NCBI GenBank assembly: GCA_965202585.1
Contig: OZ241826.1
Location: 38,316,001 to 38,380,000, forward strand
Direction of reading: 5' to 3'
Source: Thalia democratica
Taxonomy: Eukaryota
Length of the DNA stretch: 64,000 nucleotides
Under the pieces are notes generated by a model that saw only the letters and a program-made list of their open reading frames with translations, was not told the DNA's origin and made no database searches. How positions within the stretch are numbered: the stretch's first letter is position 1; each line of letters starts with the position of its first letter. This document shows, piece after piece, positions 400-63,606 of this stretch. The position numbers and the translations under genes are program-made.

Positions 400-829
400 T
401 TAAAAAGCAACGCTGTTTTCGTAAGCTGCACTTTCTTTTCTCTCTGTTAAAATTGATTATTTTTTAGTTTTATTTTTTAACTGTAAATAGAGTACTTACA
501 CTATTTTCAACAGTTACTACAAAAATTTTTAAAAGCAAGCTTACACTATTACCTTTTTATATAAACTGCCTGAATTGGAATTGAAACTTTAAATAAGAGT
601 TTGATAGTTTTATGCATAATTCTAGGTAAAAAACTAAATGTTTGTAATATTTACGTAGTCATAGTTAATGCCAAGTTAAACTATGTAAGTAAAAAAGCTT
701 AAATATAATTATTTAGTTTGTTATCATTATTTGTCTGAGACTTACCGTTTTTCTGTTTGGCTTGCATTTCAATTTCCTCTTTTTTCTTATTTTTGTAAAA
801 CTTCTTCGTACTTGTTGAGCTAATTGATT
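400..829 (-). CDS. Gene A cytoplasmic tail exons ([28 protein letters not shown] / [14 protein letters not shown])
   Basis: Exon 746-829 (CAG acceptor, GTAAGT donor, 84 nt) and exon 400-443 (CAG acceptor, TAA stop) are in phase with the TM exon. Additional small exons between 830 and 2587 are not excluded. Confidence 0.65.
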
Positions 830-3800
830 CTGAAAGTTTTTTTTTTATAAAAATAAAATTTTATTTTATTTATTTCTACTGGATTAGTTTTAGTTGAAGG
901 CACAAAAATCATTCATAACGTATCATTACCGTAATTCAACATCTTTTTTTTTTTTAATTTTTTAAATATTCTATTACCGGAAAATAATTATGTTAACAAC
1001 TACAACTTTTAATTAACTACCTTAAAATTATTATTAACTTTAAAAATATAAAAGTTATACTAAAACATTTGTTTCGTTTTTTTATTCAGATATAACCCTA
1101 AATAGTTATTTTTTAAAACAAAACATATAAAACCTACAAATAAAAATTAATAACTATCTTTAAGTAAAATGCTAAGGCAAAACTATCCACAAACTTCTAC
1201 AAAATACAATTATAATTTATTTTTTTATATCTGGTACTTACTTAACTACATTTAAAAAAGTATTTAGTTTATATTTCTGGACATAAATTTTAATACCATT
1301 TTAAATTCTAGTATTTACCTTAATAAATATAGTAGGGCATGTATAAAATGACAATAGTTTTCAATCTACAAACATCAAAAGTTTTATAAAAAATAAAGTT
1401 GAAGCGGTTTTCTTCTTCAGTTCTTACTTTTTACCCATTGTGTTCAAAATGAAAATTTCTATACTTTTAACTTTTACTAAAAAAAACGGTTTATTACCAA
1501 TTTAATATTTTTTTTACCTTACCCATATATAAACAAATTTAATAAACAAAAATAAAAAAACATCCGAAAGTCTTAATAAAAAAGCAATAAAAGAAAATAA
1601 AAGAAAACAAAAGTTAAGAACAATGCCGTTTACATCAAAAAATGTTTTAATTGAAAATAGATAATTAAAAGTTTCAAAAGCTCAAAATAAAACTTAGAAA
1701 ATTAAGAATGAGCAGTGTAACTTCATTAGCACTATAAAATATTGAAATATGAATATAAAAATTGTCTATATATTATTTTTTGAAACTCAGATTTAAAACC
1801 AACAGACAATGAAAATAACTTTAAAGTAAAAGCTTTAGAAAACATGTCTGAAGCTTGCTTTTAGTTCTGACAGACACTTTATGTTTTTGATAATTTTTTA
1901 TTAAATATTTTGTAGTTATCAAAAGCTAAATGAAGATTTTCATAACTATTAACAACAATAGATTTTATTTCTGTTAAATGTGAATTTCCTTCCAAAACCA
2001 AAAACTTAGTAAATACGCCATTAAGTTTACTATTATATAAACCTTTATTGATATTATTAACATCCATCGTTTTACCTTTATCTGATGAAACAACTTCTTT
2101 CTGCTGTTGTTGAAAAAAACTACGATTTGTTTCGTCTATAATTTCATCCTGACTACTATTGTCCATGGTAGCAAAACCATCTATGTTCTCTAGAGTAATT
2201 TTAATATTGAAAATTTTGAATAATATCAAAAATTCAGTTTTTTCAAGGCTACTTGCTTTAACACTATACTTTTTTTTTCGTAATCGTGCGTTTATGAAAC
2301 TAAGTTTAATAACTAAACACATGCTTATTAGCTTTTTAGAAGTAATATTTGAATGAATTTCTATTTTACGTTTTACGATGTTTGATATTTCTTCATAAGA
2401 CTAAATTGAAACATCACGTTGAAGCAAGCCAATAAAACATTTGTAATAATTTTCGAGTACTAAAGTGAAAAGTTCGGTTTGGAGAATAAGACTGTGTAAA
2501 TGTAGTATTATAATAGTTGTAGATGTTTCAATTAAAATTTTTGTAAAGAAATAAAAAAATTTTGATACGCAATCATTTATAACTCACCAAGGTCGTCACA
2601 AGCTTCAGTATTTTCACCACTTTCACGGTAAGCACAATATATAATAAGGAAAATAGCGAGTGCTCCTCCTACGCAGCTGCATGATATTATTATTTTCTTG
2701 CTTCTTTCAGCATCTGTCGTACCTTCATCTACTGCACCCTCTTAATAATTATTTGTTTATTAATACCTTGTTGTTATCCATAGCTTACATTATAAAATTT
2801 TCTTTTAAAATATTTAACTTATACATGAAAAGAAATCAAATAAAGCAAAAAGTAAGTTTTTCCAGCTTTTAAAAGCAACAAATTAGTTTTAGTTTTTTTA
2901 CTTATCTAATCGTTTTGATTTGTTATAATTAAATTTTATATCAGTTTGGTTTAAATACAAAATGTAAATAAAACAACAGAGATTTAAATTTAACGTAGAT
3001 ATTTTATAAAACTGTTACACTACATAATTCTGTTTATTAAAATTAGTCAAAACTATCGAAAGAAAGCATAAAAACTTAAACAATTATAATTTGATGTAAT
3101 TTGTTTTCAAAACTATCTGATGTTAAAGTGCAACATAAATGTTAATACATTTTTCCCACCTTTTATGCAAACGAGTTCGTCTTCTTTCTCCCATTTTCCG
3201 TCACTACCACATGACGTCACGTCGTTATCCGCGTAACTGCCGTCGTCACGGTAACCCAAAACTTCCCCCTGACCGCAAACGTAGTTTCCCTCGCTTCCGT
3301 ACATTATGACGTCATCAGACGAAACAACTTCTACGTGCGACGATGACGTGAGTGTGCATGCTAAAAAGATATTGTAGCTGATAAAGTAAACAAATTGTAT
3401 AGTTTATAAAAAAATAATCAAGTAAAATTTTATGACTGCATGCTAATTAGATACGTTTGAGTATTTTAATTGTTAATAAAAAATAAGTTGGTTTCACTTA
3501 TAAATGAAATGTAATTTTACGACAAGAAATAATGTTTTTAATAATGTATTTAAAAAGCATCAGTATATGTTCTATATACTTTTGTCTAGCTTTAAAAAAA
3601 CATTTAAAAACAAAACAAACTTGTAATTTTCAGTGTAGCGCCAAAATCCTGCCTCGTTCCGGTCTGGTAAGCGGCGATGACGTAAAAGTCAACAGTGACG
3701 TCATCATCTTCATAATCTAAAGGTTCGATCAACTGGAGTGACGTCATCAGAGTGTTGCTGGAAGTAGAAGAGTAAGTCACGTACCAACCCACTGTTTCTG

Positions 3801-6800
3801 ATAAGAAATAAAGTAATATATAGTTTTTAAAATAATCCTTTGTTTAAGAAAAATTTTAAAAACGGTAAAGTGATATTTTAATGGAAAATCAATTTTTTGT
3901 GATAACATATGTTTGTACAAATGTTATTTTTTATAGTTTATTTACTTACTTAGATAAGTAAGCCATAAACAAATTAAATTTCTTTGTCAAAAAATAAAGC
4001 TGTCTCACATAAATTAGGGAAAAATACTTGTTAAAGCAAATATTTATAAAACATAACAAAACTTTAGCTGAATTGTTTTTTTGTGAATGTTTCGCAAATG
4101 ACGTGACACCAAGGGATTTTTTTTAATAATTAAAATAGATAGTTTTTATTTATGTTAGTTTAATTGATTTTTTCTTAAGGGGTAGGTAGATTTACACATA
4201 GTGTAACTTAATTGCTTAAACTTCATCGTTGTATCGGATAGAGTTAGATTGATTTATTTTTACCATAAAAAACATCATAAATCTAATGTATTTTGAAATT
4301 TTAAAGTACTTAAAGAAAAAGTAAACGATTGACAAACATACAAACCGTTTGTATCTCTAGTTTCCAAACTATTATTTGCAACATCAATATTGTATATGAG
4401 TGACTGGTCGTTGTAAGTCCATCCGATAGTGTATGGCTCGTTGTTAGCAACTATTTCCGCTTGGTACAAGCTACCATAGTAACCAACTGTCCAATCGTCA
4501 CCCTGTGTACCAACAGATCTTCCAAAATTCACGTCGATGCTCGATTGGATTGCTGTTTTTAGAATTGTTTAATTAAATTAAAATATTTTTTTTCAAATAT
4601 CATTTTACATAACTTTTAGTCAAACAGCTAACCAACGCAACCATCTTGATAAGGTTCACCTTCATAACCGAATTTACAAGAACAACTGAAATTTCCCACC
4701 AAATTTTCACAATCTGTATTTTCACCACAGGTATTTGCCCTTAAGCACTCGTTTTCATCTGAAACAAAATCAAAGTTATCGAGTAGATGTAATTTGCTTC
4801 TGAACTTAATACGGAACTTAGTTAAAAAAAGCATAATAAGCAAAATAAATTTGTTTTAAGATTTAGATACAGACTTTACATTTAACTCTTTTATTAAAAG
4901 CTAGTCAAAATACAGTTTGTTTAAAAACTTAAATTACAACTATTTATAAGTTAGGCTTTTGTATTAACAAAACCAAAAGCATAAGCCAAATTAATAACAT
5001 GTCTTTGAAAAATGTTATATAAAAAATTACTACAAATTTTTAACCAATTTTAAGCATGAGTTGAAATGAAAATCCACCTCTATCGTCAACCCCTTCATTT
5101 ACCATATTTTCAGCTTTACAGCGAACATATTTTCCATTGTCACTAAGTTCTGCTGTTTTCGTGTAAGTAGATTCCTTAAAAAATAAAAATTGTCATAACT
5201 TTTTATAAGAATATTAGTTTACTAGCAACTAAACATTTTAGACTTTTGAAAATAGTTAATTATTAAATTGTTTTAAAATTACAAATTTTTCAATACCACC
5301 TCATGTATTATTTTTTAAAAAGTAATTAAAACGCTTTCAAAAAGTTTAACGTTTCAATTGACATCAATCAATTTCAACAACTTTCAAAAAGTTTCAAAAA
5401 CTTAAAACAGCGTTTAAAAACGATTCTAACAAAATCAATACTTAAGAACCTCTATTGGATAGCGTTCAATAAAGTACATATGTTTATAATAATTTTTCAG
5501 TGTAAATTAAAGTAGTATTCAATATATTTTTACGAAACTAACTTCACCCTCTTGAACAATTAAGTCGTCGAGGTAGAAAATAATTTTTGTTACGTCATAA
5601 TCCTGAGTGAAGTACAAACAATCGAACTGAAGTGTTTCAGCTTCTGGTAGAAAGGTTTCACCGACTATCGTTACTGGTGTTGGTGCTGTTTGAATATAAA
5701 TGTGGTTTTATTTTTTCAAAATACTTAATATCATATAAAAATATTATCAAAAGTTGTTTACCAGTGAAACACTGTTTTAGTTCACTGCAATCGATATTGA
5801 CTTAAAACACTTGAAAAAGTTAATTACATATAAAAGTTTACAAACAAAAAGTAGATAAAATATACAGTAAAATATAATGTTTTTGTTTATGTTTTTAAAA
5901 AACAATTTATTTTTAAAGTAATGTATTTAAAATTGTTATCATCAAATTACAATAATACTTAAACAGTTTAGACTGAAACAAACGTTGATAGCAAGCGAAT
6001 TGGTCATAGTTTTCCCACTCGGCAGTTATCAAGCATGTAGTTTCTGTACCAGAAGGTTCGCTTCCGTCTTTCAGGTATAAGTAGTAACCTGATTGGCACC
6101 CGAAAGTTCCTGATGCTTCATAGTCGTTGTTTGTGCTGACTACTCGTAATGGTGCTTCCACTGAACATTCTGTAGGAATTTATAATTTGTTTTAGCTGTT
6201 ATTTTATGAAACTGTTTTAAATAGTTAAAAGGAACATATAAGAATAGTTTTTTGAAAAAGAAAGTAGTTTTTATCTGTTTTTTTATTAAGTTAATTGATC
6301 TGAATTTGATTGTTTAGTTCAGAGTTTAATGAATGTTTTGTATTCTTAGTCTTAAAATTTTCAAAGTAACAGCATAAGTATTAATTGAGTGGCAATAACC
6401 ACCGAAATCGATAATCTGTAAAGAAAAAAATCTCGTCAACCTTTGACATCGAACTCAATTCGGTACAAATTTTCTAAAATATTTCCACCAAATGCTACCA
6501 TGGATGAAGTATTTCTCAAACTGAGGGGTTTTTTGAGTTCAAAAGTGCTAATCAGGTTTCCCGCGTTTATTTCACATGTGACCTGATATGATTTTTTTCA
6601 TAACAGCTTTTAACAAACAATTTTACATTTTAAAATGTATTATATCAAAGCTTTTACTAAATTCAAAAATGAAAAACATTTAACTCTTAAAATGCAACTG
6701 CTAACAAGTTTGTAAATTCTTTTACTTTAGTAATAATTCTACCAAATAACAAGAAGTTTTAAAATTGTGTAGCCCACTTATTTTGTTTAAAAACTTGATG

Positions 6801-9800
6801 TTTAAAATATCTACATTTTTTATAACATTTATATAAACAAACTTCATACTGGTCGGTAATGTTATTAAGTCTGGTGCAAATTCCAGTTGTATAATTCATT
6901 TCATAATATTGAGGTAGCTGATCATTGTAAGTCCACGAAAAATCAGTGACGTCATTGGTTGTCGTGGCAACAAACAAATTTCCCGCATATCCGGTCGCCA
7001 TGACGTCACTTACTTCCATCGTGCTCGCAAAGTCGCCTTGATAATAAACATGCAAAGTAACTTTAGTTTTTTCGATAACATACATTTTTGTTAGCTGTAT
7101 AAATTTTGATATCTTTTTATATGTTAAAAAATATATTTTACTTGTGCTTTTTTCAGGCTTTACTAACGTATCTTTAATAGTTAATGTACTGATTCTAAAA
7201 GACAGAAAAGTCTTTGAGTTAATTTAACAGTATAAGTGTTTATAAACAATGGTGTTAAGCTTTCTTTTAGGCTATTTTGAAATTTAGAATTAATAAAACG
7301 AAGTTTTGCAACTTTTAAAACCTAAATTGTTAAAGTGACTGCTTAAGTACCTAAAAGTTAAATATCAAATAAAAGTAAACGACAATATCAACTTATTAGA
7401 GAATACAACATAAACTACATCACATATTTTAACTAATAAGATGTTTGTTATTCATTAACATTGTAGTACCATCATGACCAAACAAATAATTATACTATAT
7501 AGCACAAAACAATAAATACTATCAAATAAAGATAATAAAAATATGTCAATAACTGTTAATAAAACATTTAAGTTCTGATGTTCTATTGATCACTACTAAG
7601 CGAAAAAAACAAATAAAGTATTAAATTCAAATTAATTACATTAATAAACTGAAATTTATAAACAAAAGTTTTAGTATATGTTAGTTTTTAACCCTTGCAT
7701 AAACTTATTATACACAGAATTAGATTTTAAAAATTCTTAATTTGTTTGCTTAATAATTAGATGAAGTTTTTAAAGCATAAATTTAAGTATTTGTAAGTTT
7801 TTTACCTGTTTTTTAAATTACTTGACAAATTAACCAAGTAGTGTTAAGTATTCTATTTTAATTGTTTTATATTAAGTATAGGTATTCATAAAAAACACTT
7901 AAATTATGAAAAGTTAAAATTAGACGTTTAAAAACTTAAATATGTTCTCGTAAAAACTTGGTATCGTAGATTTAGAAATGTATTCATAAAATAATGTATC
8001 AATGTAAAAACTTTTATATTATGACACCAAGTTTTCTTAAACTAAAATATTTTTTAAGTAGCTATACTCAACACCTCAAAGCATAAAAGACAACAAGATA
8101 AGTAAGCTTCAGACTAGAGTAAAATAAGTTTTAAAATTTTAAAACTGGGTTGCTTAAGTTTTGTTTTGGTAAGCAAGTGTAAAATATTTTAATACAAAAA
8201 TAAAACAACAAATCTTCATTTGTTAACTATTACCATACGACTGTTTATGCAAAGTTGTTATTAAAAACTATAGTTAAAAAGATCTTGTTTTCAAAACAGT
8301 TTGTTATCGTTTCAAAAAAGAAAAAATTATAAACAAAAAAATTGTAAACACTTAGTTTAAGGATAACTCTTTTTATATTCTATGATTTTAGAATGATTAT
8401 TTGTTTTTTATTATTTAGAAAACAAACTTGATGTTTTTTTTTTATGAATAAAAAATCTTTTAGTGTTTTAAGTTGCGAAAAAGGTTTCAAGTCAAAACAA
8501 ATACTATACTTTTTTCCATAATACTTTTTTAAGTTTTAAAATTATGAAGTTGATAAAGAAATATTAACATAAGTTCTAATATAATATTAGTAAAACGAAT
8601 AATACACTAAATTTTTAATGCTTTTATTATGCATCACTTGACAAGTCAAAATCATTTGTTTAAACAGATGAATTGTAAATAAGCGCATGAGCTAAATTTA
8701 CTACTGAACAAACACTCACTGTTATAAAGTTCAAGTTTGTTTATTTACTTGTTTTCACACGAACACTAAATAAAGTAGGACAACATTCAGTCGATCAAGT
8801 TTAAATTGGACTTTAATCAGTTTGTTTGAGAATTTTTAAAGTTTTTCACATTACAAAATACGTTTTAAGTGCTTTTTTAATAAGATTTAGTGATTATGTG
8901 GTTATGTAGTATCTAAATCACTTGAACATATTGATATCAATCAAGTTTTAAATTTGCTCTTTAAACACGGGAAAAGCATGTAATCTAGTCAGTTAGTTTT
9001 TAATATAATTTTATCAACAAAATTGTTTAACATCATTACATCACAAAAAGCATAATTTTAAATATATTTTGTTAACTTTTTATGCAATAATAAACTTATG
9101 AACTTTGAATATAGTAGTTTTACTTTACTATTAGTCAAATGCTCAATGTTTTAACTAAACTACTAAAACTTTCAAAACTAAATTTACTATTTTATTCTTA
9201 AATCTTTACATTTTAAATCATTAAATATAAAAGTTAGAGTATGTTTTCACATAGTAAAGTATAAATTAAGTTTATAAGGTAATTTTAAATATATCACACC
9301 TTTACATACAAAAAAAAAGTTAAGTTTTGTTGTAAGTTTTCCAACAGTCACGAAATAAAAAATAATTATAACTTTTATGATAAATAAGAGTTTTTTAGAA
9401 CATGTAATTGAACATTTAGACATTATAATTTATACAAAAGGAAGTAATTATACATATAAGAATTAAACACTTTTAAGCTGTAAAACCTAAATGTAACTAA
9501 GTACATGATAAGATATTAATATTAAAAAAATGACAAACCAAAACTTTATAAAATTTAAAATCGTTGTAAAAAGTTAGAATATCGAAACCATTTTGAGTTT
9601 TAGAAAAATCATTAGTTTTATTAAAGCAGTAATATTAAAAGGTTACATATTACAGTTATACTATTTCATACAAAAATATTCATGAAAACAAAACAAAAAC
9701 TGTTTATAATTTAAACATATTCTAGTGGTATGTAAAGTTTTTTTAAACAGTTAAAGTAGTATGGTTTACGGTAAAACGTTAATTAGTACATTGAACTTCT

Positions 9801-12800
9801 TTAAGGTAAAAACAAAATATCTTTAAAACTACTATTACGTTTTATATCGCAATACTTTATTACCAGCACATTGTCAGAGCATTAAACTCCATCTATGACA
9901 TTTATTACTTTTAAAACTTAAAAATACTTTTCATCAATTAATAACAAAGCAAATAGTACTAAATAAACAGGGTAACAAACTTTTTATTACCACAAAAACA
10001 AACAACTACACAAAAACGAACAAACAAAATATGAAAGTTTTCTATTTACTCATGTTTCAGTTTGCTTCAAACTCAACGTCAGGATATTGAACTGCATCCT
10101 GATCCTATCGACTATTTGTATTGCGCAAATGTTAAAACGTCAAATACAGCAAAATATATCAAGTTGGTATGACTAAAAAATTTCTTTAAAAAATCTGTTT
10201 CATTGATTGTTTTAATTTCAAATGCAAACACCTAGGTTATCTTGAGGATACAATTATATTTTTTAAAATGCTTGAAGTTTTTCATATATTCTTTAAGTTC
10301 AACCACCTATGGGTCATTGAACTGATACTCTAAATTGATATGACTAAAAAATAAAATAACGATTTTTTTTTAATTTCCATTACAAACATAAAACCAACCT
10401 TGTGGACACTGTATCGAACCCTCGTACTCCCAAGTCCCATCAGCTGTACAAGTAGTAAACGTTTCTCTCCAGGGGACATAATCGTTTGAATACAAAACTC
10501 CGTTGTTGTCGCATATGAGGTTTCCTGTACTCTTGTACAATGGATCGTCTATGTAAGGTGTTACTGTAACGTGGTCTTTCACTTTGAAGCATTCTGTTAA
10601 TTACGTTTTGATGCTTCTTTCCATTATAAGATTAAGGGTTCGTTTCAAAAAGATTAGATTAAAGTAAGTGTCCTTAAAAAAATATTTTGGTGCTTTTCAA
10701 TTCAGTTTTTTTTAACTAGTTTTGTTTAACAAAGGGAATTGTTGAAATAACGCTACAAAATCACAGCTTATGCATGTTATTCTGAAATATCTTAATTAGT
10801 TTACACCTGCAGTTCAGTTTGATTTTTTTGGTTATTTTACAATTAGTTTTAGACTTTATTAGTTCAAGTATAAACCTTTTATCTTAAATGTACTTTATTT
10901 GTTTGGCTACTAAAATTAAATATAAATGATGATACAAAGTGTGTAATAAAGATAAAGAAATCTTAGAAGCCACAATTAATTCTAATAGTTGTTAGTTAAG
11001 TTTTTAACCGTGTGAAAGTGAGACTTGTAAACAAAAACTGACGCTTTACAGTAATCGTAACGTTGAAATCCTGTCTCGCTCCGCTCGGGTAAGCAGGTAT
11101 CAGGTAAAACTCGACTAGTTCCTGGTCATCGCTCAGTTCAAATCCGGTTCTGATGTTGATAGAAGATCTAAAAACATCGTTTGAAACAGTTTCGTAAGTC
11201 AGGAAGAAATTTGTCGCTCCAATTCTATTTTCTTTTTCAGCTTCTTGTATGGTCGGTCCAATCGTATATTCTTCATTTTCACCCTTGGAAAGTTCATTTA
11301 GCATGAATAAAATAGTTAAAAATTATTTTTTGAACAAACGAAAAACACCAACAAAATATTATAAACTGCTATATAATGCAAAAAAGCAAAGTTTTTTATT
11401 AAAATAAACACACTACTACACAGTTCTACTAATATTAAAGATAAAGTTATAAGTCGTTTACTGACTTATTTCTACCTTAAAGTTCCATCCCAAAGTAAAA
11501 GGTTCAGTTGTAGTAATAGTTGCTTGATACAAACCACCAGTAAATCCTTTTGCCCAGTCGTCTGCATTGCCCCTTGAATAGTAGTTAAGACTCCTCTCAA
11601 AAGCAATTGTGACGTTTGAATCCAACACTTTGTTAAAAGTAGACAAAAAAATGATGTTAGATTATTTTTACTACTTTTACATTTAATTTGGTTTATGTTT
11701 ATATTTTTAAAGGCATAATAATCTTCACTATAACTATAAGCTTGTATTAAATTAAATTTTTATCTTAGTTTTAAACCAAACAAACTTTCACTACAATCAA
11801 CCAATGGGTCTCCAGAATAGCCAGGACTACATTGACAAATAAAACTTTCTAAAGTATTGAAACAATCAGCATTGGTCCCACAAGGGTTACTATCACACTC
11901 ATTTATTTCTGTTTTTTTTTGGTATTGTATTAAAATTTAATTCAAAGACGTTTAGTACAAACGCCACACTGCTCATGAAAATGAAAATAAAGAAAACAAA
12001 GTAGTACCTTCAGTGCAAATAAATTTATCTTCATTCAGCCATCTACCATCAGCCGTACATATAGTTCCGTATTCATTAACGTCAACTTCACTTCCATCTG
12101 CCAACGACAAGTATGTTTCTTTTGGGCAGCTGTAAGTACCTTGCGAGGAATAATTGACATCCGTGAAAGGAGATACTATGCTGTCAGTTGAGCATGCTGT
12201 TATGAAATTAACTTTTTAGCGCTAGAAGTGTTTGCTGATTTTATTTCAAATTAAATAAAAATGAAAAGGTCATATTTTAAAAATTTAGTGTATATATTTT
12301 TTTTACTATTTATATAAAGTGAAATCTGATTTGGATGTTATACAAATAAGTTATAGTTGTTCAAAAATGAAATGAACTTTTTTGTGAGAAAAAAGGTTCA
12401 AACTAGACATATTAGGAAAGGAATTTATAAAATAATGCTTTTTGTTTTTGATTTAAATTTACTTAAACAAAACCCACTTGTAATAGAAATAGTAGCAGAA
12501 AAGTCTTGTCTCTCGTTGCCAATGTAATCTGATACAGTGAAGAATTCAACCTTCTTACCCTCGTCCCCAGCAACCAGATTCCTTAGCAACCTCATCGTCG
12601 TCACGTAACTACCCCTCGGTGTCTTCTCATACGTCACGTAGAAGTTGCCTGCTGATCTCGAATTTGGGAAATACCCAACTTTGATACTCTCCTCATCACC
12701 ATCGAACTTCCACGTGGCGGTGTAAGTTTCCCCGTTGGCGAATATTTCCGCTCCATAGAAGTTTCCTTGGTAACCTTGGGTCCAAACGTCGTCATAGGAA

Positions 12801-22050: not shown

Positions 22051-22339
22051 AGTTAAAACGTTTACTTGATTTAATGATTCTGCCGTTAGTTGTTTTGTTA
22101 AATCAATTTACTGTTTTAACTTTTGTTTTAGTTTTCACTAACTTTGTACTTATTTATGTCGTACTCTTTACAAAGCTAAAAAAATACAAAATTTTAGACG
22201 AAATCTTCTTTTTTAACTAATTAAACAAAAAATTACTGTACATAATAAAAAAACTTTGAGAAAAAACTAAAATGTGTAAACAAATTTGATTTAGAAAAAT
22301 ATTGGTATTGTTTAAAAGCAAGTATAAAGCAACAATTTT

Positions 22340-22555
22340 TATAATCTAAAAGCAAACACTTCATTTAAGCTGAACACTGATTTCGAATACTCATCGACAA
22401 AATTAATCAAATAAAAAAGGTAAATATTAACAAAGCTGTCAAACTAAATAATTTTGTTTTGTTTATATTTCATATTTTCACGTAAACGCACTTAATTGTT
22501 TCAACGTTGATGATTAAGCGACGATAACTTTTATTATGTTGGTTTGTGGTTTTAA
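22340..22555 (-). promoter_or_regulatory. Conserved upstream (promoter/5' UTR) block of gene A
   Basis: Reverse complement aligns by eye to 40418-40642 (shared AAAACCACAAAC, AACAATTA, GACAGCTT.GTTAATA.TTACC, ATTTGATTAATTT, CAGCTT..T.AAGTGTTTGC), at a similar distance from the ATG. Confidence 0.6.
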
Positions 22556-40887: not shown

Positions 40888-40948
40888 ATGATTTTAAGGA
40901 TTTTAAAACAAATATCATTTATAGTTTTACTTCTCCAGTTAGTATCAG
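40888..40948 (+). CDS. Gene B first coding exon, signal peptide [20 protein letters not shown](G)
   Basis: ATG, hydrophobic core, GTAAGC phase-1 donor; ends LLQLVSG like gene A. Confidence 0.85.
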
Positions 40949-52900: not shown

Positions 52901-55900
52901 CTTTAATTTAGTTGATTAATTAAAACGAACAAAATTAACAACAGAGCGGGTGACACGGATTTCTATGCTACTTTTGAAAGACTAGCTGCAGGTCAACTCA
53001 GGTCTGTAATGAAGGTGATTACACCATTTGATATGAGTGACGATCAGAAAAAAGTTGAGTTTTATTTGAACCCTGCCTATCCTTCGGGAACCCCACAGAA
53101 CTTCGACAGAACCATCACTGTTAAAGGTTGGCATAAAATTATTAGTGTATTAGTACGTTAGTGCAGTACAGTTCTTTAGAATTTAAAATCTAACATATTC
53201 ACTAAGATTAATTTGTTTTTTGATTATGGAATATACGAAGGGTTGTGCTTAGTTTTTTGTTTTTGTGTTCATATAACTAAATCAATTACCGTTTTAATAA
53301 AAACTAGCTAACTACAATTAATATTTCTCGCAGAGTGCAGCACATCAGGTGGTCTTGTAGTAACAAACGAACCGATATACAACAATGAAGGTGATTTCAG
53401 TTGCGGTGAAGACGTATTAACTTACAAGAATGGAACGGTGGCTGGTGATGTGTCGACTGTTTGCAGTGCTGATGGTGTTTGGGTGGGAGTCGATGACTTA
53501 CAGTGTATCAAAGGTATAATTGATGTGTTGTTATAAACCGTTTACCTAAGTAGTCAAATGTTTTGCAACATCATACTACTGTTTAAATAGAATGCTAAAA
53601 ATAGGCTGTGCAAAACTCTATATTTAAATCGATACATACAATAAAAATACTTTCTTAGATGTTCACGTATTTTTAGAACATAGTATTACTAGCTTCTAGT
53701 TATTTAAAAGGTCTTTTTTATGAAATTTAAAACAAGATAATTTACAGAAGCACCGTCAATAATTTCATTATTTGAATACAAAGCTTAAAAAGCTGCAGTT
53801 TTAATTAAAAAATAGTTTTCCACATCTCCACATTATTAAAAAATATATTTTTAGATGTAGACGAATGCACAACAGACAAACCTTGTGATCCAAATGCACA
53901 ATGTATGAACACTCCCGGAAGTTTTACTTGTACATGTAATGATAAATACACTGGAGATGGTTTCACCTGCACGGGTATACTTTACTTTTCTTATTTCAAT
54001 ACATCGAGTTTAACTGTAAATGCTTTTAGAACTTTTAATAAGATTTTAGTAAGAGTATGTCTTAGTAAAAAAATGAAAGTTACCTTAGACTATGCTTTTT
54101 CTTCAAAGAAAAAAAACTTTCATACTGATTTGATTGTTAATTTTTGTGTGACAACAGCTCTGTATTGTTTGTTTTCAATCAGAGTTTTTTTTTCTAGAAC
54201 TGGTCTCAACCATCCAAGTTGATCTTCACCGCGTCGTCGGTAACCAAGACAACGACTGGGCCATTGGTTACCAGGGAGATTTCTACGAGGCAACTATCAC
54301 TAGTGAAGACGAACCGATGACTTTGGGCTGGTCGTTCAAGGGCGAGACCATAGAAACGAACGTAGTTGCCATGAACAGCAGAAAATACGAAAATTTTTAC
54401 GTCACTTTTGATACGAAAAATGACGTCATTGTAACTAGGATGGTCCTGCTGCAACCCCTAATGGAAAGTGACAGTGGGGAAAAAGTGGGATTCTACACGG
54501 TTTCAGGGTACCAAATTGATAATCCGAGACAGGATTTTGAAAACACGATCACTGTTAAGTGTAAGTTAGGCATAGAGTTAGAATAGTAATATTAGAAATT
54601 AAAATTTTAATTTAACTTATTTAATCTTTGTTGTAAGTAATAAAGCTGTTAAATGGAGCATATAAGTCCAATTCAATATGATATTTAAGTGCTAAATCAA
54701 TAATGACTCTTGAAATATTGCAGTTAACAATTACACATCTTTTTCGAAACTTCTTTATTTTTTTTAAACACAAGGCTCGACACTACTAGACTTAGAGAAA
54801 TTTTAACTAAAAATAGACCCACTTAAAAGAATTTGGAATATATTATTTTATTCATAAACATTTATTCTGATAAAACCTTACAAGAAATGTACATTTCTAT
54901 TTAGTTAATTTAATACCCGAAGACTATTTTTAGTTGCTCAGTTTTAATAATTAAGTAAACATTTGTATCATTGTATATTTTATAAATAAACAACAGCATG
55001 CTCATCCGACGGTTTGGTTTCTCCTTTGATGGACGTTGATTACAACTCACTTGGACTTTACTTCTGTCCACAAGGTCAATACTTATCGTATAAGAATGGT
55101 AGTGAAGCAAATGCGTACCAAACTGTTTGTACGGCTGATGGTAAATGGGAAGACGAAGACGACTATATTTGCAGTACAGGTATTTTTTAAGTACATAAAA
55201 CTATATATTTAATTAAAAAATGTTAAATAATATGAGCATTTATTAAGTTGTGATTCTGATCAGTTTTTGACATTTACTATTTAGTTTTCACTAACCTTGG
55301 CTTATAAGAAAATGGTAAACGTCGTATTGTTTATGAGTTAAGATCTTCCAAAAAGTATTTTTTATTTTAATTATACAAAAGCAGTAGCAACAAGTAGTTG
55401 TTATCTTAAAAATTAGAAAAATATATATAAACATTCTAAATTGTAACTCAAAAACTTGTAACTTGATAATGCTATCTAAGCTTTGTTTTAGTATTCTAAA
55501 CTACCAAAAATCCTGTTACCAATTAACAGATGCAAATGAATGCGATTCAAACCCCTGTGGAACAAATGCAGATTGTTTCAACACTTTAGGAAGTTTTATT
55601 TGCCAATGTAGTCCTGGATATTCTGGAGATCCGCTTGTAGACTGTAGTGAAAGTTTGTTCGTTTTATATTTAATATAAAATTGATTATATTTCAATCTAA
55701 TCAGTAATACAGTTCTGTGATGCTCAAACTGTATGTATTATTACCATAACATGACAATAAACGATTTAAAAACCATAAATGTGCACATAAAACTAAAAGA
55801 TAAAGTTGGTGTTAATTATTGACTCACCTTAAACTTATGCAGTTTTTAAAAACTTTTTTTATTTACAGTATTGGATTCAAACATCCAAGTTAACTTTGAT

Positions 55901-58900
55901 AGAAGCACTGATGGAAACGCAGATGATTGGGCAACAAGTTTCACTGGGGGTTTGTACGAAGCTGAAATAACAACTACTGAACCATTTACTGTTGGCTGGA
56001 CTTTTAAGGTAAAGTTATCACAAATCACTAAATAACAAAATATACATGTGATAATGTTTACTTGTGTTTCTTAAGGAAAGTTTTGTAAAGCTATTATAAA
56101 TGTAAGTGTATGCATTTCAAAACAAGAAAAAAACAAGATATAAGTTTAACTGACAGTCACATCGAGCCGTTTACTGTGGCTGAACATTTAAGGCGAAACT
56201 TTCGTAATCCACCAAAAACAAAACATGCTTCTTTACTTTATAATTGTTAAGCAATATTGTGCATATCTAACATACATACAAGTAAATTCGTTACTGATAT
56301 TTCCACTTTATGTTTTTTAAGGAAGAAAACGTGCAATACACAGTTGAACTACCCTCACCGGCTGCAAGACAAAATCGAGCCGGGGACACTAAATTTTATG
56401 CGACATTTGAAACACTCTCACCTGGAGTGTACAGGTCTGTAATGAACGTTATAGCAGGACTCAATTTGACTGATGATGGGGAAAAAGTTGAGTTTTATCT
56501 TATACCCGCATATCCGTCCGGGGATCGACAAGATTTTCCAAGAACAATTACAATGAAAGGTAGCTGCTTTTTATTGACTAAGGTTGTTAAAAAAACAATG
56601 AATTTAAGAAAAAAAACTCTTTTGTTGAAGTTAAAAAGACACCTAGTTTAATATTTTGTATAAAATATAACTATTTGTTGTGGTTATACTTTTTTTTTAT
56701 GTAGTTATAACACTTTAATAAACTAAAAACTACACTTTTTTTTAAACTTTATAAATATTTTTAATTAAACAATGTTAAACAAATTTAAATATTTTCTTTA
56801 AAGTGTTAAACTTTAATGCAAGTTTGATATACACTAAAACTAATCAGAATGCTTCGATGTACAAAACCACGTAACAACCACAACCAATCAAAACACGTAC
56901 GGTAGCGAAGGGGATTTTATTTGCGACAACGGCGGGGTTCTGACAAACGAAGCGGGAAGCCCCTACGTCGATCCAAGTACAGTTTGCAGGGCTGACGGTG
57001 TGTGGGAGAATGAAGATACAATCAAGTGTCCTGATGGTTTGTTTTATTTAAGTGCTTTTTTCAACGGGTTTTAAAAATAAACCTACTTTTAAAGCGTTCT
57101 TACTACGCTTTTATGGTTATTCTGATATTTAATCTCAAAGTTTAATTACATATTTTTTCTAACATTTTGAACACGTCTTAAAACATTATAATCCACTTAA
57201 TTTTTTTTAAATACTCATAAGTGAAATACATATGTTACATACAGAATATCGATATATTTAATGACTTAAAATAATTTTGTATGTCTTTGTGAAACTAAAA
57301 TATTTTGTTGTAGGTTGCAGTTTTTCATTTAGTTAAGTTCTGATTTTTGTTTATCTAAAAAAGTGTTGTGTTATCCTCCCATTATCACTTTAAACTATTA
57401 TAATATTAAAATGCAATTTATTTGTATTCAATCTCAGAATTGCCCAATTTAAGTTTTTCTATTTTATAATTACGTATATATACTGCTCGTCATTTAAAAC
57501 TACTTAAGATTTTATTTTATAATGTTTTATAATTTAGATAGTTGTTTAAAAATTTCATGATGGTGTGTGCAAATAGTAATGATTCTTAATAAAGTTGAAA
57601 CTATTTTTGTAGGTAAAAAAGCTTAAATTTATAGCTTTTTTACTGTATAACTAGTTTATAAGTAATAATCCAAATTTTAGATTTTGTTTTGTTGACTTGT
57701 ATGAAATTTAGTATAAACATTTAGTGAGTATTTTTCTTGTTTTTTTAAACACAACTGCCAAACTTTGCTTGAAATGTTTTGATTTTATAATTTTTGATTT
57801 TATATGCTGACGTTAAACGACATAAAAAAATGTTTGTTACGAAATCTCGATAGCTTGAACTTATGCTTGTAAACCCTTATTAACAGATAGTTGCCATGTA
57901 TTGTACTTAGATGTATTTTTATATAAAGGGTAATGACTTCTTTTTCATTGCTTTTGCATAGTTTTTTAAAACCTATTAAAAATAACCTTTTTACGTGTTA
58001 TTTTTAAAATAACCGTAAAACTTGATGTTATCTCATATTGTATATAAAGTTAGTTACTTAAATTAACTCTAACACACGTAAATTTATTACAACTTAACAA
58101 TAAATTTGAGACAATTTTAAAAAACTTTATGCTTAAGTATTTAAAATAACCGTAAAAAAACTTAACAAACGGTTAAGTTTATAAACTTGAATGTTTATAA
58201 GAATAAACTGAAGTAAAATTATTTTTTTAACAATTAGACTTCTTTATTGCACGAAAAATAATCAAAAAAGTATTTAGAATTAAACAAAAACTTAAGTGAA
58301 AAATTGACTAATTGTTATGTCATTCAACATACTTTGTCATAGTAGTTATGTTTGAAACCATCAATTTAACTAGCTTGTTTTTTGTTTACTGAGATTATCT
58401 AAAACTTAAACTTCAAGAATAACACTGTCATTGCTCACTTTATAGGTCAAATAGTATTTGAACTGTCAATTGTAACGTCGTAAAGTAGTAACAAAAAAGC
58501 GTAAAAAAGCTAAATTAAGTGGGTTAACTGAGTAATAAAAACACTTTTAGTAGGTCAGATGTTTAAAAACGTTATATTTGATGGTTTGCAATAGTATAAA
58601 AGCACTTTAAAATTATTTTGTAACTTTTCAAAACTTTGTTTAAGTTATAAGATTGTTAATAGAACTAAAACCCTGAATAAAAAACGTTGTATGTTTGAAA
58701 AAAATTAATGATTTTCAATATTGTTTGACTTTAGCAAATAAATCAGCTGGTTAAGGTCGAAATTTATATTTAATTGCTCGAAATTTGGTGAAAAATGCAC
58801 GTATACTGAACGCTTGCACACAAGTAAATAAATAAACAAACTATTGAACTTTATTATAGCGAATGTTTGCTTTATATTAAAATTAGCGTATGCGTCTGAT

Positions 58901-61900
58901 TAAAAACCTTCTGTTTAAACAAAAATGTTTGACTTGTGAAATTTTGCATGCTTGAATAGCAAACATTGTCGAAAGTAATTTAAAGTAAACTCGATTTTGT
59001 TTAATTTTTGTTTTAATAAAAATTTCGTCAGAGTTGTTTTGTTTGAAAGGCTGCGTTAACCTTGAAACTTGAAAGTATTTTCAATCAATAAAGTTTAATT
59101 GTGGTCTTAAAAACTTAGTTTATTGCTAATTGATATTGAGTTCGACTGTCCAAACAAAAAAACTTGAAAACAACGGAGTTTTGAAGCTTAGAATATAAAA
59201 TAAAGTTGAAAAGTTATAATCCTCCAACTAGACATAAATGTTGCCTTTTGATCTATCCAGCAATTGATTTGAAAATAAAATTGAAACTAACAGTTAAACT
59301 AGTTGAAGAAAAAGTAAAAAGAAAAAACAAATTATAATCATATTTTGGTATGTATTTTGTAAAAAAAACTTTATTCTAATTGTATTACTAACCTACAAAA
59401 TAAAATAAACTACCACATATTTTATTTTATACATACAATGTAAATCATTCTTATGTCTAATAAAACAATTAGTATTGTATGCACAATAAACTGTATGAAA
59501 ATATAAACCGCTTTTGAAAAAATTTACAGGATCTAAAAAAAAAAACCCACTTGTTTTAACTTTATTATGAATTGCAAATAAATAGTTTGAATACAGAAAA
59601 CTTTACTTTAAATAAAAACCCAAAGTTTATTTTTGGTTAATTTTTATCATACAAAACATTTGATACTGTATTCGTTACAAATTTAATTGTTTATTTGTTT
59701 TTATTAAACACTTAAACTGTTTATTTAATCTTGATAGGTGTGTATACAGTCAACAAAAACAAACAACTAAATTACAAAAAATGAAGTATACTTCAATTGA
59801 ATTTAGTTTTTAGATAACTGTAACATAAGTTTTTGTTGTTTCTATTTGCTTTTAAATTGAGTTTTTGGAAACTTAAGCATCACGTTTGACAAAAAATTCT
59901 AAAAACAATTAAATTCTTTATTTAACAAAATTAAATAAAACAATTAAATTCTTTATTTAACAAAATTAAATAAAAACAATTAAAATAATTATAAACTTTT
60001 TTAAACTAATGTTTAAAACAGGCTCTTTACTAACGTAACAAACTGTTCAAACCGTCACATTTTTAAACACTTACCACCTGAATGCTTAAACCACATTATC
60101 ATCTTAGGCGATTTCTCGAGCACGATAAGTGTCGATGACGTCATAGGAACGGGATACGTGGGCGACCTGTACGTAGCTGAAATCACAAATGACGTCACAA
60201 TGATAGTGTGGACGTACAACCAGCAGAGCGCTCAAAGTTATAACGTTGAAAGTGACGGTAGTTGCACTCTGCAGACGGATGGTAGCGACAATTTTGAAGT
60301 TAGTTTATATTTTACTTACTATAAAGGTGGTACTTGTCTATTGAAAAGAAGTTCAGATTAATTCACTACATTGTATAAAATACTTGTTTATCTAATACAG
60401 TTGCTATTAAGCAAGTTTTAAGAAACAATGATAAACTTCATTTGTTATGTTCTCTACCTTAGTTATATAAATATTTTTTTATTTCTAATTTTTTTATTGC
60501 TATACAAGTACATAAAATAAAAGACTATTTGTTTTATAAGAAGTCAAACGTAGTTTATAACATATCATTTTCAAATAAGGTCTCGTGTGAGAAAAATGGA
60601 GGAAATCTTATTAGCACTTTTACTCTCAAAACACCCCTTGTTCCTATGGAATCTTCTTCTGTTGCTTTTAGCACCAACGTCGACCCTATTTTGTATGAGG
60701 CTAACTTCGATGTTAAAGGTTATAAAATTTCATGTTTCTAACATAACCTTATTACAGCCTATACTATTTAAACTACTGTATATATAATGTTGAAATTTTT
60801 TTGTTCATATCAATGAGTTTAACTTAGCAATATTTTCTGACGTCCTTTTATACTAGTTAAGGTATTGAATAATTCTTTGTAAACTAGTTAATCAATTAAA
60901 TTGTAATAAGCTAATTCAATAATGTATTTCTTATAAAATACTTTTTTTTTCAACACTTATGGAAATTTCGTAAACATTTTATTTTAAACATTTGTAGTTT
61001 CTAATACAACTTATTTATGTTACAGAATGTTCCGTCGAGGCGCCATTACTAGTAGAAAGTACAAACAACGACTATGAAATCTCAGGAACTTTCGGGTGCC
61101 AATCAGGTTACTACTTATACCTGAAAGACGGAAGCCAACCTTCTGGTACACAAACTACATGCTTGATAACTGCTGAGTGGGAAAACTATGATCAATACGC
61201 TTGCTATCAACGTTTGTTTTGATGACTTTTTTAAATAGTTCAGGAAACAACTTAACTATAAACTATCTTTTTAAGGCTGAATTCTTTATATTCTTAAATA
61301 AGTTGTTTTAATTGTTTCTGTTACGATCAGATGCTTTAGTTTGTAACAACTTTGTACTAGTTAAGACAAACAACTCAAACATGAATTAACCTTAGAAAGA
61401 ACATTTTTAAATTTAAATTTATAAAGTTTTTGTTGCACATTTGTCTTAAAACTTATTAACAAAAAATTATTAGATCAATCTATTAAAACATCACAGTCTG
61501 TAAGAGGAATGAGATAGTTGCTTAGTTATACGGTTCAGAATTTTATTTCGTCATCATTTTTGTAATTGAAATACAGTAAACTAATCAAACGTGCTCCACT
61601 GTGGTTTAAAAGTACAAAACCAATTGATTAACTTCATATTTTATCCGAACAGCACCGACTCCGGTAACAATTGTCGGTGACACTTCAATGTCGGAAGCTG
61701 AAACGCTTCAGTTCGAATGTTTGTATTTTACTCAGGATTATGACGTAACAAACATCATATTTTATATAGATGACGTAGTTGTTCAGCAGGGTGAAGTTAG
61801 TTTAATTAAATGATAAAAACCTCGAACTACATTGTAAAATTAAATTTAATACACTAAACAAAATTTCAACAAGCTAAGATTCAATTCAATAAAAAAAGCA

Positions 61901-63606
61901 ATTGAATATTAGTTGCGTAAATAATACTAATAAGCATTAGGTCTTTTTACATTAGCTGTTGTTGTCATATACCATATTTTTGTTTTATAGAAAGACATTA
62001 TTAAGCTGTGAAATACAGTTACTTAAACTTATTTTAAAAGGTTGTCGTTCAAAAACTTTAATAAGTTCTTACTATATTTATATGCATCAAATTACTCAAT
62101 ATAAAGTTAAACAGTATACTAACTTTTATAATATCTAAGACTTTAAAACTTAAAATACGTAAATTGAAGAAACCTATTTTATCTTAGGATACAACTTTCA
62201 CAAAAACAGCAGAAGTAAGTGACAATGGGAAATATGTTCGTTGTAAAGCAGAAAATATGGTAAATGAAGGGGTTGACGATAGAGGTGGATTTTCACTACA
62301 ACTCATGCTTAAAATTGGTGAGAAAGCCTCTAAAAAATATTAAGCTACAATTTTTTTTCAAATGAATTGTATTACGTTTTGTAATGCCTTTTGCTTTACT
62401 TATTTGAAAACAAACTTATTTTTTACAAATAAAGTTATACTTCAACAATTTATACAAAAAGTTTATTTACTAAGTTGTGATAAAATAATCAAATTAGTCA
62501 AATTACCCTTTAACCTATAATATTTATTACTTTTAGATGAAAACGAGTGTTTGAGGGCAAATACCTGTGGTGAAAATGCAGATTGTGAAAACTTGGAGGA
62601 AATAGATGGAAGTTTCAGTTGTTCTTGTAAATTCGGTTATGAAGGTGAACCTTATCAAGATGGCTGCGTTGGTTAGCTGTTTTATTGATTTAAACCATTT
62701 ATTCTGACAAACATGTAATTTATTTTATCGTGATTCAAATAAAACATATTGATGTTTTTACAAAAACTTTGGACGTATAATAACTAAGTAATAAAAAAAT
62801 ACTTTACACAGCAATCCAATCAAACATTGAGGTTACATTCGAAAGATCTGACGGTTCACAGGGGAATGACTGGACAACTGGTTACTATGGTAGCATGTAC
62901 CAGGCCGAAATAACTGCTAACAACGAACCATACACTATTGGGTGGACCTACAATGGCCAGGCAGTTATATACAATATAGATATGCAAAGTTATGATGTAA
63001 ACTTCAGAGCTACTAATGGTTTGTTTTATGCTCAGATAGTTTTTTTTTTGTAAAAATAACAGCAATGGGTTCACTGTTTAGAGCTTTTATGTAGTTAAAA
63101 TGGTTTTAAAATTGGCTTTTTTTCTTATATATACAAACTTTAAAAGTTCTAAAGTTAAAAAAACAAAAGCTTAAACAGGAATAGCAATATTCATGTCATA
63201 CCTTAGTTATCAATAGAGTTACATATTTTTTTTTGTCAATAAACTGTTATAAATTATTTAGTAACGACTCTTAAAAAAAAATAAGTTGTTTTCAAATTTA
63301 AGAAAAAACTATTAATTTAACAAATATATTTCAAAAAGACTTAGCCAGTAAAATGCAATTAGAGATTATAAAAGTGTTTATGTTTAAAATAAACCAAACA
63401 CTTTCACAAAATAGACATTTTATAAACAGAAACAGTGGGTTGGTACGTGACTTATTCTTCTACTTCCAGCAACACTCTGATGACGTCACTCCAATTGATC
63501 GAACCTTTGAATTATGACGATAATGATGTCACTGTTGACTTTTACGTCATTGCTGCTTACCAGACCGGAACGAGGCAGGATTTTGGCGCCACACTGAAAA
63601 TCACGA
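40888..63606 (+). CDS. Gene B (3' end outside window): paralog of gene A, SP-X-sushi-Ig-EGF-[X-sushi-EGF]x6-X-sushi-X-sushi-Ig-EGF-X-..., >2,350 aa
   Basis: Exons: SP 40888-40948; X0 41854-42222; S 42539-42733; Ig 43438-43601+43907-44036; E 44431-44547; X 44940-45133+45450-45660; S 46124-46318; E 46695-46817; X 47086-47328+47548-47682; S 48062-48253; E 48882-49004; X1 49239-49442+49640-49816; S 50158-50349; E 50599-50715; X5 50970-51335; S 51638-51823; E 52096-52218; X3 52453-52669+52945-53126; S 53334-53513; E 53855-53974; X4 54198-54560; S 54997-55179; E 55530-55652; X6 55869-56008+56322-56559; S 56848-57036; X7 60108-60298+60580-60718; S 61026-61211; Ig 61653-61795+62188-62317; E 62537-62671; X8 62812-63018+63430-63606. 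All are GT..AG and frame-consistent; several exon lengths equal their gene A counterparts (204, 366, 186, 143, 130, 207, 177 nt). Confidence 0.88.
58818..58950 (+). promoter_or_regulatory. Conserved non-coding element in the ~3.1-kb intron of gene B
   Basis: Paralogous to 8630-8760; contains forkhead-like TAAACAAA / TGTTTAAAC words. Confidence 0.55.
59902..59985. repeat. 35-bp tandem repeat, ~2.4 copies
   Basis: AAAACAATTAAATTCTTTATTTAACAAAATTAAAT at 59902 and 59937, plus a partial third copy. Confidence 0.8.

Follow-up and report, generated by a model that had tools for sequence, protein, structure and literature searches.

What do the two very large genes that lie head to head in one 64,000-nucleotide stretch of a tunicate genome encode, and do they form a recognition locus? 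The stretch, called the window below (contig OZ241826.1, positions 38,316,001 to 38,380,000 of the forward strand, with coordinates counted from its first letter), carries gene A on the minus strand and gene B on the plus strand. An earlier, sequence-only reading had proposed a diversifying family of paired receptors for self/non-self or gamete recognition. We find that A and B are ancient paralogs, both intact and divergently placed, in the genome of a tunicate. Their products are type I membrane glycoproteins whose rod-like ectodomains comprise 25-36 small domains and are built on a repeating unit composed of a domain that we call X, a sushi domain (S) and a calcium-binding epidermal growth factor-like domain (cbEGF, or E). 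Taken as a whole, the results are best explained if A and B are, as is probable, signalling adhesion or recognition receptors of a superfamily defined by a predicted V-like immunoglobulin (Ig) domain paired with a sushi domain.

The gene models were built from phase-1 AG/GT boundaries, from homology among the repeats and, for junctions inside split X domains, from a hidden Markov model of X. A six-frame reading together with an explicit model gave gene A 34 exons and 2,012 amino acids, from the ATG at 22050 to a stop codon at 400, in the order signal peptide-[X-S-E]x5-X-S-X'-S-Ig-E-X-S-transmembrane segment-tail, where X' is a cysteine-bearing X. The cytoplasmic tail is about 110 amino acids long. 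The parts of gene A, from the N terminus, are:

21990-22050, minus strand: exon 1, with ATG and signal peptide, placed by a hydrophobic-core scan, a phase-1 donor and homology to the gene B leader
18161-20041, minus strand: unit 1, X 20041-19838 + 19339-19169, sushi 18760-18566, cbEGF 18277-18161
16524-17919, minus strand: unit 2, single-exon X 17919-17542, sushi 17140-16946, cbEGF 16652-16524
14352-16298, minus strand: unit 3, split X 16298-16091 + 15748-15564, sushi 15057-14863, cbEGF 14471-14352; the X-internal junction was picked by homology to an RNA-supported gene B junction and is less certain
13078-14136, minus strand: unit 4, single-exon X 14136-13765, sushi 13585-13400, cbEGF 13200-13078
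11786-12843, minus strand: unit 5, single-exon X 12843-12478, sushi 12196-12008, cbEGF 11908-11786
10399-11627, minus strand: unit 6, split X 11627-11476 + 11283-11043, sushi 10593-10399, without EGF and followed by a 3.4-kb intron
4633-7036, minus strand: unit 7, X' 7036-6843 + 6582-6441, sushi 6169-5984, Ig-like 5685-5543 + 5174-5045, cbEGF 4758-4633
3160-4552, minus strand: unit 8, split X 4552-4346 + 3797-3621, membrane-proximal sushi 3360-3160
2588-2740, minus strand: transmembrane exon, on an RNA contig that runs across sushi, transmembrane segment and first tail exon
2189-2043, 829-746 and 443-400, minus strand: tail exons, with the stop at 400

Gene B begins with an ATG at 40888 and has 39 exons inside the window (exon 39 ends at 63606), which encode 2,344 amino acids. 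Seven further exons lie past the window, within the 4 kb that follow it (locus L004), for a total of 46 exons and about 2,696 amino acids. Its order is signal peptide-X0-S-Ig-E-[X-S-E]x6-X-S-X'-S-Ig-E-X-S-X-S-transmembrane segment-tail, and its parts are:

40888-40948, plus strand: exon 1, with ATG and signal peptide, from the gene model
41854-44547, plus strand: N-terminal unit, X0 (cysteine-bearing) 41854-42222, sushi 42539-42733, Ig-like 43438-43601 + 43907-44036, EGF 44437-44547
44961-46817, plus strand: unit a, X 44961-45133 + 45450-45660, sushi 46124-46318, EGF 46695-46817, without a gene A counterpart
47086-49004, plus strand: unit b, X 47086-47328 + 47548-47682, sushi 48062-48253, EGF 48882-49004, without a gene A counterpart
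49239-50715, plus strand: unit 1, X 49239-49442 + 49640-49816, sushi 50158-50349, EGF 50599-50715, RNA cover on exons only
50970-52218, plus strand: unit 2, X 50970-51335, sushi 51638-51823, EGF 52096-52218, RNA cover on exons only
52453-53974, plus strand: unit 3, X 52453-52669 + 52945-53126, sushi 53334-53513, EGF 53855-53974, set exactly by four GT..AG RNA joints
54198-55652, plus strand: unit 4, X 54198-54560, sushi 54997-55179, EGF 55530-55652
55869-57036, plus strand: unit 6, X 55869-56008 + 56322-56559, sushi 56848-57036, without EGF and followed by a 3.1-kb intron
60108-62671, plus strand: unit 7, X' 60108-60298 + 60580-60718, sushi 61026-61211, Ig-like 61653-61795 + 62188-62317, cbEGF 62537-62671
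62812-63606, plus strand: X of unit 8, 62812-63018 + 63430-63606
Beyond the window, in L004 numbering: sushi 58-258, X 820-1013 + 1296-1485, sushi 1970-2158, transmembrane segment 2728-2883, tail 3306-3389 + 3664-3707

All 78 introns of the two genes are GT-AG and 67 are in phase 1 (29 of 33 in A and 38 of 45 in B), the exceptions falling inside X or Ig domains. There are no in-frame stops, and the exons are short in a window that is very AT-rich (G+C 21-33%). The long intron (3.1-3.4 kb) occupies the same position in both genes, after the sushi domain of the EGF-less unit, and only about 115 nucleotides of it can be aligned; hidden EGF exons were sought in these two introns of about 3 kb (7037-10398 in A, 57037-60107 in B) and none was found. 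The models agree with the sequence-only reading in several respects. It had described two divergent, giant, paralogous receptors with signal peptides, and their ends at 400 and 63606 were exact, with gene B at more than 2,350 residues rather than the 2,344 found in the window. Its repeated X/sushi/EGF/Ig exons joined by phase-1 introns were borne out, as were the transmembrane helix and tyrosine-bearing tail of gene A, the conserved tyrosine lying in the last exon.

RNA evidence came from the one data set with matching sequence, a marine metatranscriptome. Its contigs match the window at 90-99% identity over exons and leave the introns out, and about eight of the splice joints show up in them. 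In gene B, clean GT..AG joints were found at 52218/52453 (EGF to X), 52669/52945 (between the two halves of X), 53126/53334 (X to sushi) and 53513/53855 (sushi to EGF). In gene A they were found at 3160/2740 (sushi to transmembrane exon, on a single contig that continues into the first tail exon) and 5543/5174 (between the two halves of the Ig-like domain). Because of these joints and the exon-only cover, we conclude that transcription and splicing follow the models, be it in genes A and B themselves or in the orthologs of a very close relative. The exon joining proposed earlier stands at the clean joints, four in B and two in A, and stands less cleanly at three others in gene A (transmembrane exon to tail, X-internal near 4346/3797, and Ig to EGF), which appear in RNA only with extra or unaligned letters. 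At the first of these (2189-2198 / 2588) the RNA contig includes six additional letters (coding strand TTACAG), perhaps because the related animal uses a different or displaced acceptor. The gene A tail has RNA cover at 2043-2192 and at about 600-990.

Which modules make up the repeating unit? We took as cbEGF a six-cysteine EGF fold with the N-terminal D-x-D/N-E-C calcium-binding consensus and a score above the Pfam gathering threshold, and the E modules score 33.8-39.4 bits against EGF_CA (PF07645; threshold 27) and 35-41 against EGF_3 (threshold 28.5), with E-values of 7e-10 for EGF_CA in the EGF exon of gene A unit 1 and 1e-8 for EGF_3/EGF_CA in unit 4. For the sushi domain, also known as the complement control protein (CCP) or short consensus repeat (SCR) module (Pfam PF00084), the pattern spans about 60 residues and has four cysteines, with a tryptophan between the third and fourth, all of them invariant. 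In an alignment of 19 copies, all four cysteines were invariant and the tryptophan nearly so, which is the CCP fold pattern. Single sushi exons did not reach the Pfam gathering score of 20.7 bits, the best scoring 13.9-16.5 (E 0.011-0.076, the 0.011 being the membrane-proximal copy of gene A unit 8, under the cut-off) and the others giving no match. Run against solved structures, a profile of the sushi copies matched the CCP modules of MASP-1, C1r and MASP-2, with E-values of 3e-6 to 2e-4. Its sequence pattern and these profile matches mark S as a true, though divergent, sushi domain.

These matches bear on a complement-type or pattern-recognition surface protein, comparable to complement receptors and regulators or to SVEP1/selectin-like proteins, in which the sushi domains would bind complement or microbial ligands and X would be a mere spacer. 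MASP/C1r CCP modules are indeed the best matches of the sushi profile, and sushi with cbEGF is typical of complement and selectin-type proteins; the modest E-values, however, show a shared fold only, and C-type lectin, CUB, protease and thioester partner domains are absent from A and B. X is, moreover, the largest and best-conserved part of the unit and is under purifying selection, unlike a passive spacer, and we regard this explanation as very unlikely.

The Ig-like domain spread over two exons carries the classic D-x-G-x-Y-x-C-x-A-x-N signature. Pfam matches to its half-exons are weak (for the N-terminal copy of gene B, Ig_2/ig at E 0.03-0.04 in one half-exon), and that copy is 41-45% identical in amino acids to the other Ig-like domains. 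The domain shares homology with one Ig exon of a contig-8 gene described below, and the Ig exons next to that one score above the Pfam Ig_2 cut-off.

X itself is about 122 amino acids long, and most copies have no cysteine. Pfam found no family in the X exons at E <= 1. A profile of six copies run against 1.84 billion representative proteins gave 19 matches, all fragments of 171 amino acids or fewer; four of these were traced to metagenome assemblies in the European Nucleotide Archive, two of them labelled as Tara Oceans marine, on contigs shorter than 1.3 kb that give no genomic context. No full-length relative was found in the protein collections, because they include no annotated proteome of such a tunicate. 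A feature search of the ESM Atlas with X had its best score (0.82) with bacterial repeat proteins, below the trust threshold, and was dismissed as noise.

The AlphaFold prediction for the X of gene A unit 4 was a nine-strand sandwich with a predicted local distance difference test score of 79, in which two sheets include strands C' and C'', as in the V-set. Foldseek searches of PDB and AFDB clusters returned weak, generic Ig-like matches (template-modelling scores 0.4-0.57), and an exhaustive VIA search ranked V domains consistently. A core (R..DDW..GY.G.FY.A.I…EP.T.GW.F) is conserved over the 19 window copies, with length variation mainly between strands C' and D. X is thus predicted to be a sequence-cryptic Ig domain of V-set topology, usually without cysteines. 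As a sequence family of Ig-like domains it is new, missed by Pfam and by sequence searches.

Does X occur elsewhere in this genome? Across the 802-Mb assembly the X profile matched 64 places. On contig 6 (32,027,600-32,032,300, L006) lies a third long gene of the E-X-S type, whose units are closest to those of gene B. On contig 8 (4,428,000-4,600,000; L007, L010-L023) there is a dense tandem cluster with at least 25 X matches on both strands. Gene orientation in it changes from minus to plus at about 4.477-4.481 Mb, which makes this cluster, too, a head-to-head arrangement. Genes in this cluster have the form X-[S+X]-[S+X]-S-Ig-Ig-Ig-transmembrane segment, with sushi and X fused in one exon and without EGF. 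Aligned by hhalign, the window and contig-8 X profiles matched at a probability of 98.3% (E 2e-14); the contig-8 profile recognised all 19 window copies, and the X' copies scored better with it than with the window profile. Smaller groups of X occur on contigs 9, 10, 4 and 1. A and B belong to a lineage-restricted superfamily founded on the pair of predicted V-like Ig and sushi domains, which includes the shorter receptors of the tandem cluster on another chromosome. A possible tail exon in the contig-8 cluster (L007:9016-9147) holds the motif GHYENL, an echo of the Y-E/D-N of the window genes.

The nature of the animal was read from its mitochondrial contig 1833 (L008, L009), which is 14.1 kb long, with nearly all genes on one strand and about 24 tRNAs, including those with anticodons UAU and UCU. 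The invariant COX1 motifs (FFDPxGGGDP, FGHPEVY and GGxTG) read correctly only if AGR codons specify glycine, which is the ascidian (tunicate) mitochondrial code. Because AGR stands at invariant glycines of COX1, the organism is a tunicate. Other markers added little. Six-frame, exon-by-exon searches for cellulose synthase (PF03552) and GH6 (PF01341) gave no match and were uninformative, the GH6 controls having matched nowhere. No match to the MPG glycosylase (PF02245) was found in the genome, which is weak evidence but agrees with the loss of this enzyme reported for thaliaceans and appendicularians. For let-7 the mature sequence was absent, with a sub-threshold match only. The let-7 results and the AT-richness would have suited a cnidarian or some other non-bilaterian, a reading rejected on the tRNA count and on AGR as glycine. 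A pelagic tunicate, possibly a salp, is suggested by the low G+C, by the MPG result and by the relatives in metagenomes and the metatranscriptome, of which at least some were sampled from marine plankton. COX1 fragments with many stops also occur as several nuclear copies, at about 56.84-56.94 Mb of contig 4 and on contig 757.

Among described designs, the closest is that of the Fester family (FF) and the fester co-receptors (FcoR) of Botryllus schlosseri, whose N-terminal Ig-like domain was found only by AlphaFold, resembles the V domains of vertebrates with its nine strands, and is directly followed by a sushi domain; FcoR consists of a signal peptide, this V-like Ig domain, sushi, two more Ig domains, one transmembrane segment and a tyrosine-bearing tail (PMC12582321). 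The analogy with Botryllus fester drawn in the sequence-only reading was apt: here too the animal is a tunicate, and a predicted V-like Ig domain, recognisable from structure only, stands directly before sushi. In both systems the Ig-like domain is encoded by one or several exons and the genes are clustered and multiplied. Of the FcoR layout, the window genes show the order of X and then sushi, one transmembrane segment and a tail, and in two units an Ig-like domain follows the sushi, but the module is repeated and interleaved with EGF; the contig-8 genes, with X-[S-X]x2-S-Ig-Ig-Ig and a transmembrane segment, are a closer fit to FcoR than the window genes are. In contrast, A and B repeat the Ig-like and sushi pair 8-11 times, insert cbEGF modules and are 4-6 times longer; FF has three transmembrane helices after its sushi domain, compared with one in the window genes; and the window tails carry Y(E/D)NS rather than an inhibitory tyrosine motif of the ITIM type, a hemITAM or the core-1/core-2 motifs. 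Membership of the FF/FcoR family cannot be claimed for the window genes, because tail motifs, number of transmembrane segments (three in FF), EGF modules and repetition of units all differ and the likeness is one of described design.

A deep link to the tunicate allorecognition receptors is nevertheless possible. In its strongest form, X plus sushi would be a true homolog of the V-like Ig and sushi module of Botryllus fester/FcoR and a tunicate-wide, immune-type scaffold older than the stolidobranch split; the window genes would represent this module concatenated on a giant scale and, with the contig-8 cluster, would serve individual, chain-mate or mother-embryo recognition in a pelagic tunicate. 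We hold this version as tentative and rather doubtful. The stolidobranch ascidian and the lineage of this, probably thaliacean, tunicate separated about 389 million years ago (calibration quoted in PMC13746493).

How old is the pair, and is it diversifying? Similarity between A and B is limited to exons, with introns, promoters and spacer unalignable; the duplication is therefore old. The signal peptides are homologous (...FLLQLVS and ...LLLQLVSG). Amino acid identity per unit ranges from 53 to 93%: unit 1 of gene A, for example, is 73% identical to the gene B unit at 49239, and in the mirror-image units 7 the sushi domains are 90% identical and the X' domains only 53-54%. The fifth unit of gene A pairs with unit 2 of gene B (X at 50970-51335), the two X domains being 89% identical with a synonymous divergence (dS) of 0.19. 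Three N-terminal units and one membrane-proximal unit of gene B are missing from gene A, and a counterpart of the gene A tail exon 2189-2043 was sought in gene B and not found. The earlier statement that A and B differ in module count, order and local identity was thus correct.

At the paralog level, the ratio of nonsynonymous to synonymous divergence (dN/dS), computed unit by unit, lay within 0.04-0.42 in all the X, S, E and Ig units compared, none being near or above 1. The dS values form a mosaic, 0.19-0.26 in a few exons and greater than 1.4 in most. This indicates purifying selection with patchy, exon-limited homogenisation, not domain-wide diversifying selection, and the term "diversifying" used in the sequence-only reading is not supported by the comparison. 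Three exon pairs (12843-12478/50970-51335, 6169-5984/61026-61211 and 3797-3621/63430-63606) are 92-94% identical in DNA, with dS of about 0.2, while their flanking introns are unalignable and their neighbouring exons saturated. Such near-identical pairs suggest exon-limited gene conversion or selection on synonymous sites.

In a DNA run from the same species, window positions 52473-52833 were represented by a contig identical to the window and by another, of similar depth, with 30 substitutions and one indel over 361 nucleotides. The variant contig spans exon and intron, and since the next genomic match is only 69% identical, no paralog in the assembly explains it. It is a second haplotype, about 8% divergent, from which, without a control region, nothing specific to the locus follows. 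The coding variants listed are a mix of synonymous and conservative changes.

This haplotype would fit the earlier proposal of a hyper-polymorphic self/non-self or gamete-recognition locus whose alleles are told apart by diversifying X and sushi domains, as in fuhc/fester or Alr. So would the tunicate identity of the animal, a V-like Ig and sushi module like that of the Botryllus allorecognition receptors, the expansion and clustering of the X family in the genome, and the different number and order of modules in the two paralogs. However, dN/dS is low in every unit, the variants seen are synonymous or conservative, and the wild-plankton transcripts are close to the window rather than wildly divergent; the 8% figure has no genome-wide baseline of heterozygosity beside it, and tunicates generally show high heterozygosity. 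Nor is the suggestion of "paired receptors" supported: A and B end in tails of one type, which share the Y-E/D-N-S-V motif, and are not an activating/inhibitory or receptor/co-receptor pair. We judge such a locus decidedly unlikely.

The tails are central to the question of whether A and B signal. Each gene has only one hydrophobic segment, in one exon, and the shared C-terminal sequence is SAAY(E/D)NSV(A/Q)F, gene B ending in SAAYDNSVQF. The last exon (44 nucleotides), which holds the tyrosine, is a 91% identical island between A and B amid otherwise unalignable DNA, with a conserved acceptor and in frame with a conserved phase-1 GTAAG donor. The motifs YxxI/L/V and [A/D]VYxxV (covering ITIM, hemITAM and core-1/core-2) were sought in both tails and were absent.

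A purely structural role, in which A and B would anchor zooids, tunic or epithelia by adhesion or through matrix, with neither recognition specificity nor signalling, would account for a very long, rod-like ectodomain with calcium-binding EGF spacers, for purifying selection throughout, for the small number of long-type genes seen (two in the window and one on contig 6) and for the high depth of the RNA contigs in the plankton sample. We nonetheless think it unlikely. The tyrosine motif and the C terminus have stayed conserved between paralogs with saturated introns, which suggests that adaptors read the tail, and the domain family otherwise occurs in clustered, expanded, Ig-bearing receptors.

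If A and B are signalling receptors, as we favour, the V-like X, most variable and indel-rich in its C'-C''-D part, would form the ligand-binding surface together with the adjoining sushi, and the cbEGF modules would act as calcium-stiffened spacers. The protein would then be a cell-surface adhesion or recognition receptor that may signal through SAAY(E/D)NSV(A/Q)F, where a YxN tyrosine of the Grb2-SH2 type and a hydrophobic, PDZ-like C terminus could recruit SH2 and PDZ adaptors.

Several points weigh against a signalling receptor of this kind. The role is deduced from genes, transcripts and predicted fold. The V-like fold was predicted from shallow alignments (6 and 19 sequences), and X has neither the canonical disulfide between Ig strands B and F nor a Pfam V-set or Ig match. 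The likeness to FF/FcoR comes from described architecture rather than from sequence comparison. The 44-nucleotide exon with the tyrosine motif is itself not covered by RNA, and a read-through ending (…NNYI) is possible in its place. Finally, the transcripts match the window at 90-99% identity and may come from a sister population or species rather than from the sequenced animal.

Mosaic receptors of Ig, sushi and EGF domains are known; what appears undescribed is the sequence family of X and the regular order of the triplet, for which, as the sequence-only reading had anticipated, no described match was found. Other systems resemble A and B in part. Halocynthia HrVC70, made of EGF repeats, and Ciona vCRL1, made of sushi repeats, are ascidian gamete self-recognition proteins. 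Like A and B they are tunicate surface proteins of tandem EGF or sushi modules, proposed to act in individual recognition; unlike A and B they consist of a single module type without X, and are vitelline-coat or follicle proteins polymorphic between individuals. The membrane-distal Ig-like domains of Hydractinia Alr proteins, reportedly described in 2022, are said to be V-set-like only in predicted structure. These proteins share with the window genes a single membrane pass, cryptic V-set-like domains and clustered families, but they are cnidarian, have tandem Ig-like domains only, without sushi or cbEGF, carry tails of the ITAM/ITIM type (with immunoreceptor tyrosine-based activating or inhibitory motifs), and have demonstrated homophilic, allele-specific binding. 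The Alr locus consists of clustered gene families (10.1101/2022.03.25.485889). The Botryllus proteins fuhc-sec and fuhc-tm are secreted and transmembrane tunicate proteins with EGF repeats and Ig domains, encoded next to the fester genes, but at 555 and about 1,000 amino acids they lack the X-sushi-EGF periodicity and are defined by extreme polymorphism (PMC3691228). SVEP1/polydom, the selectins, CSMD and the CCP-bearing MASP-1/C1r likewise place sushi and calcium-binding EGF on phase-1 exons, whereas none of them has a V-like Ig domain in regular alternation with sushi and EGF, and their other domains differ (vWA, pentraxin, CUB, lectin), with no orthology detected.

The genome uses a cryptic, predicted V-like Ig domain with sushi in two ways, in an FcoR-like tandem cluster and in a pair of proteins of 2,000-2,700 residues of the form [Ig-like, sushi, cbEGF]n. 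If X plus sushi were homologous to the Botryllus module, the origin of the chordate scaffold of V-domain and sushi receptors would become directly testable; even without homology, the pair illustrates cleanly how exon shuffling can concatenate modules, with homogenisation that is patchy and confined to exons.

The 18.8-kb spacer between A and B holds other open reading frames. On the minus strand at 27053-27460, a frame of 136 amino acids looks by eye like the end of an endonuclease from a long interspersed nuclear element (…PNIDW…); Pfam found nothing in it at E <= 0.01, and the retroelement reading is unconfirmed. Two further frames, which are not parts of the receptors, encode RING fingers:

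34463-35125, minus strand: RING-finger open reading frame, Pfam zf-RING_2 E 4e-12
37001-37231, minus strand: RING-finger open reading frame, Pfam zf-RING_2 E 6e-12

An Atlas search with the RING protein was uninformative as to taxon. The two RING frames lie in tandem and have near-identical C termini; the second looks truncated or split, and the open reading frame at 37386-37727 may be its upstream part.

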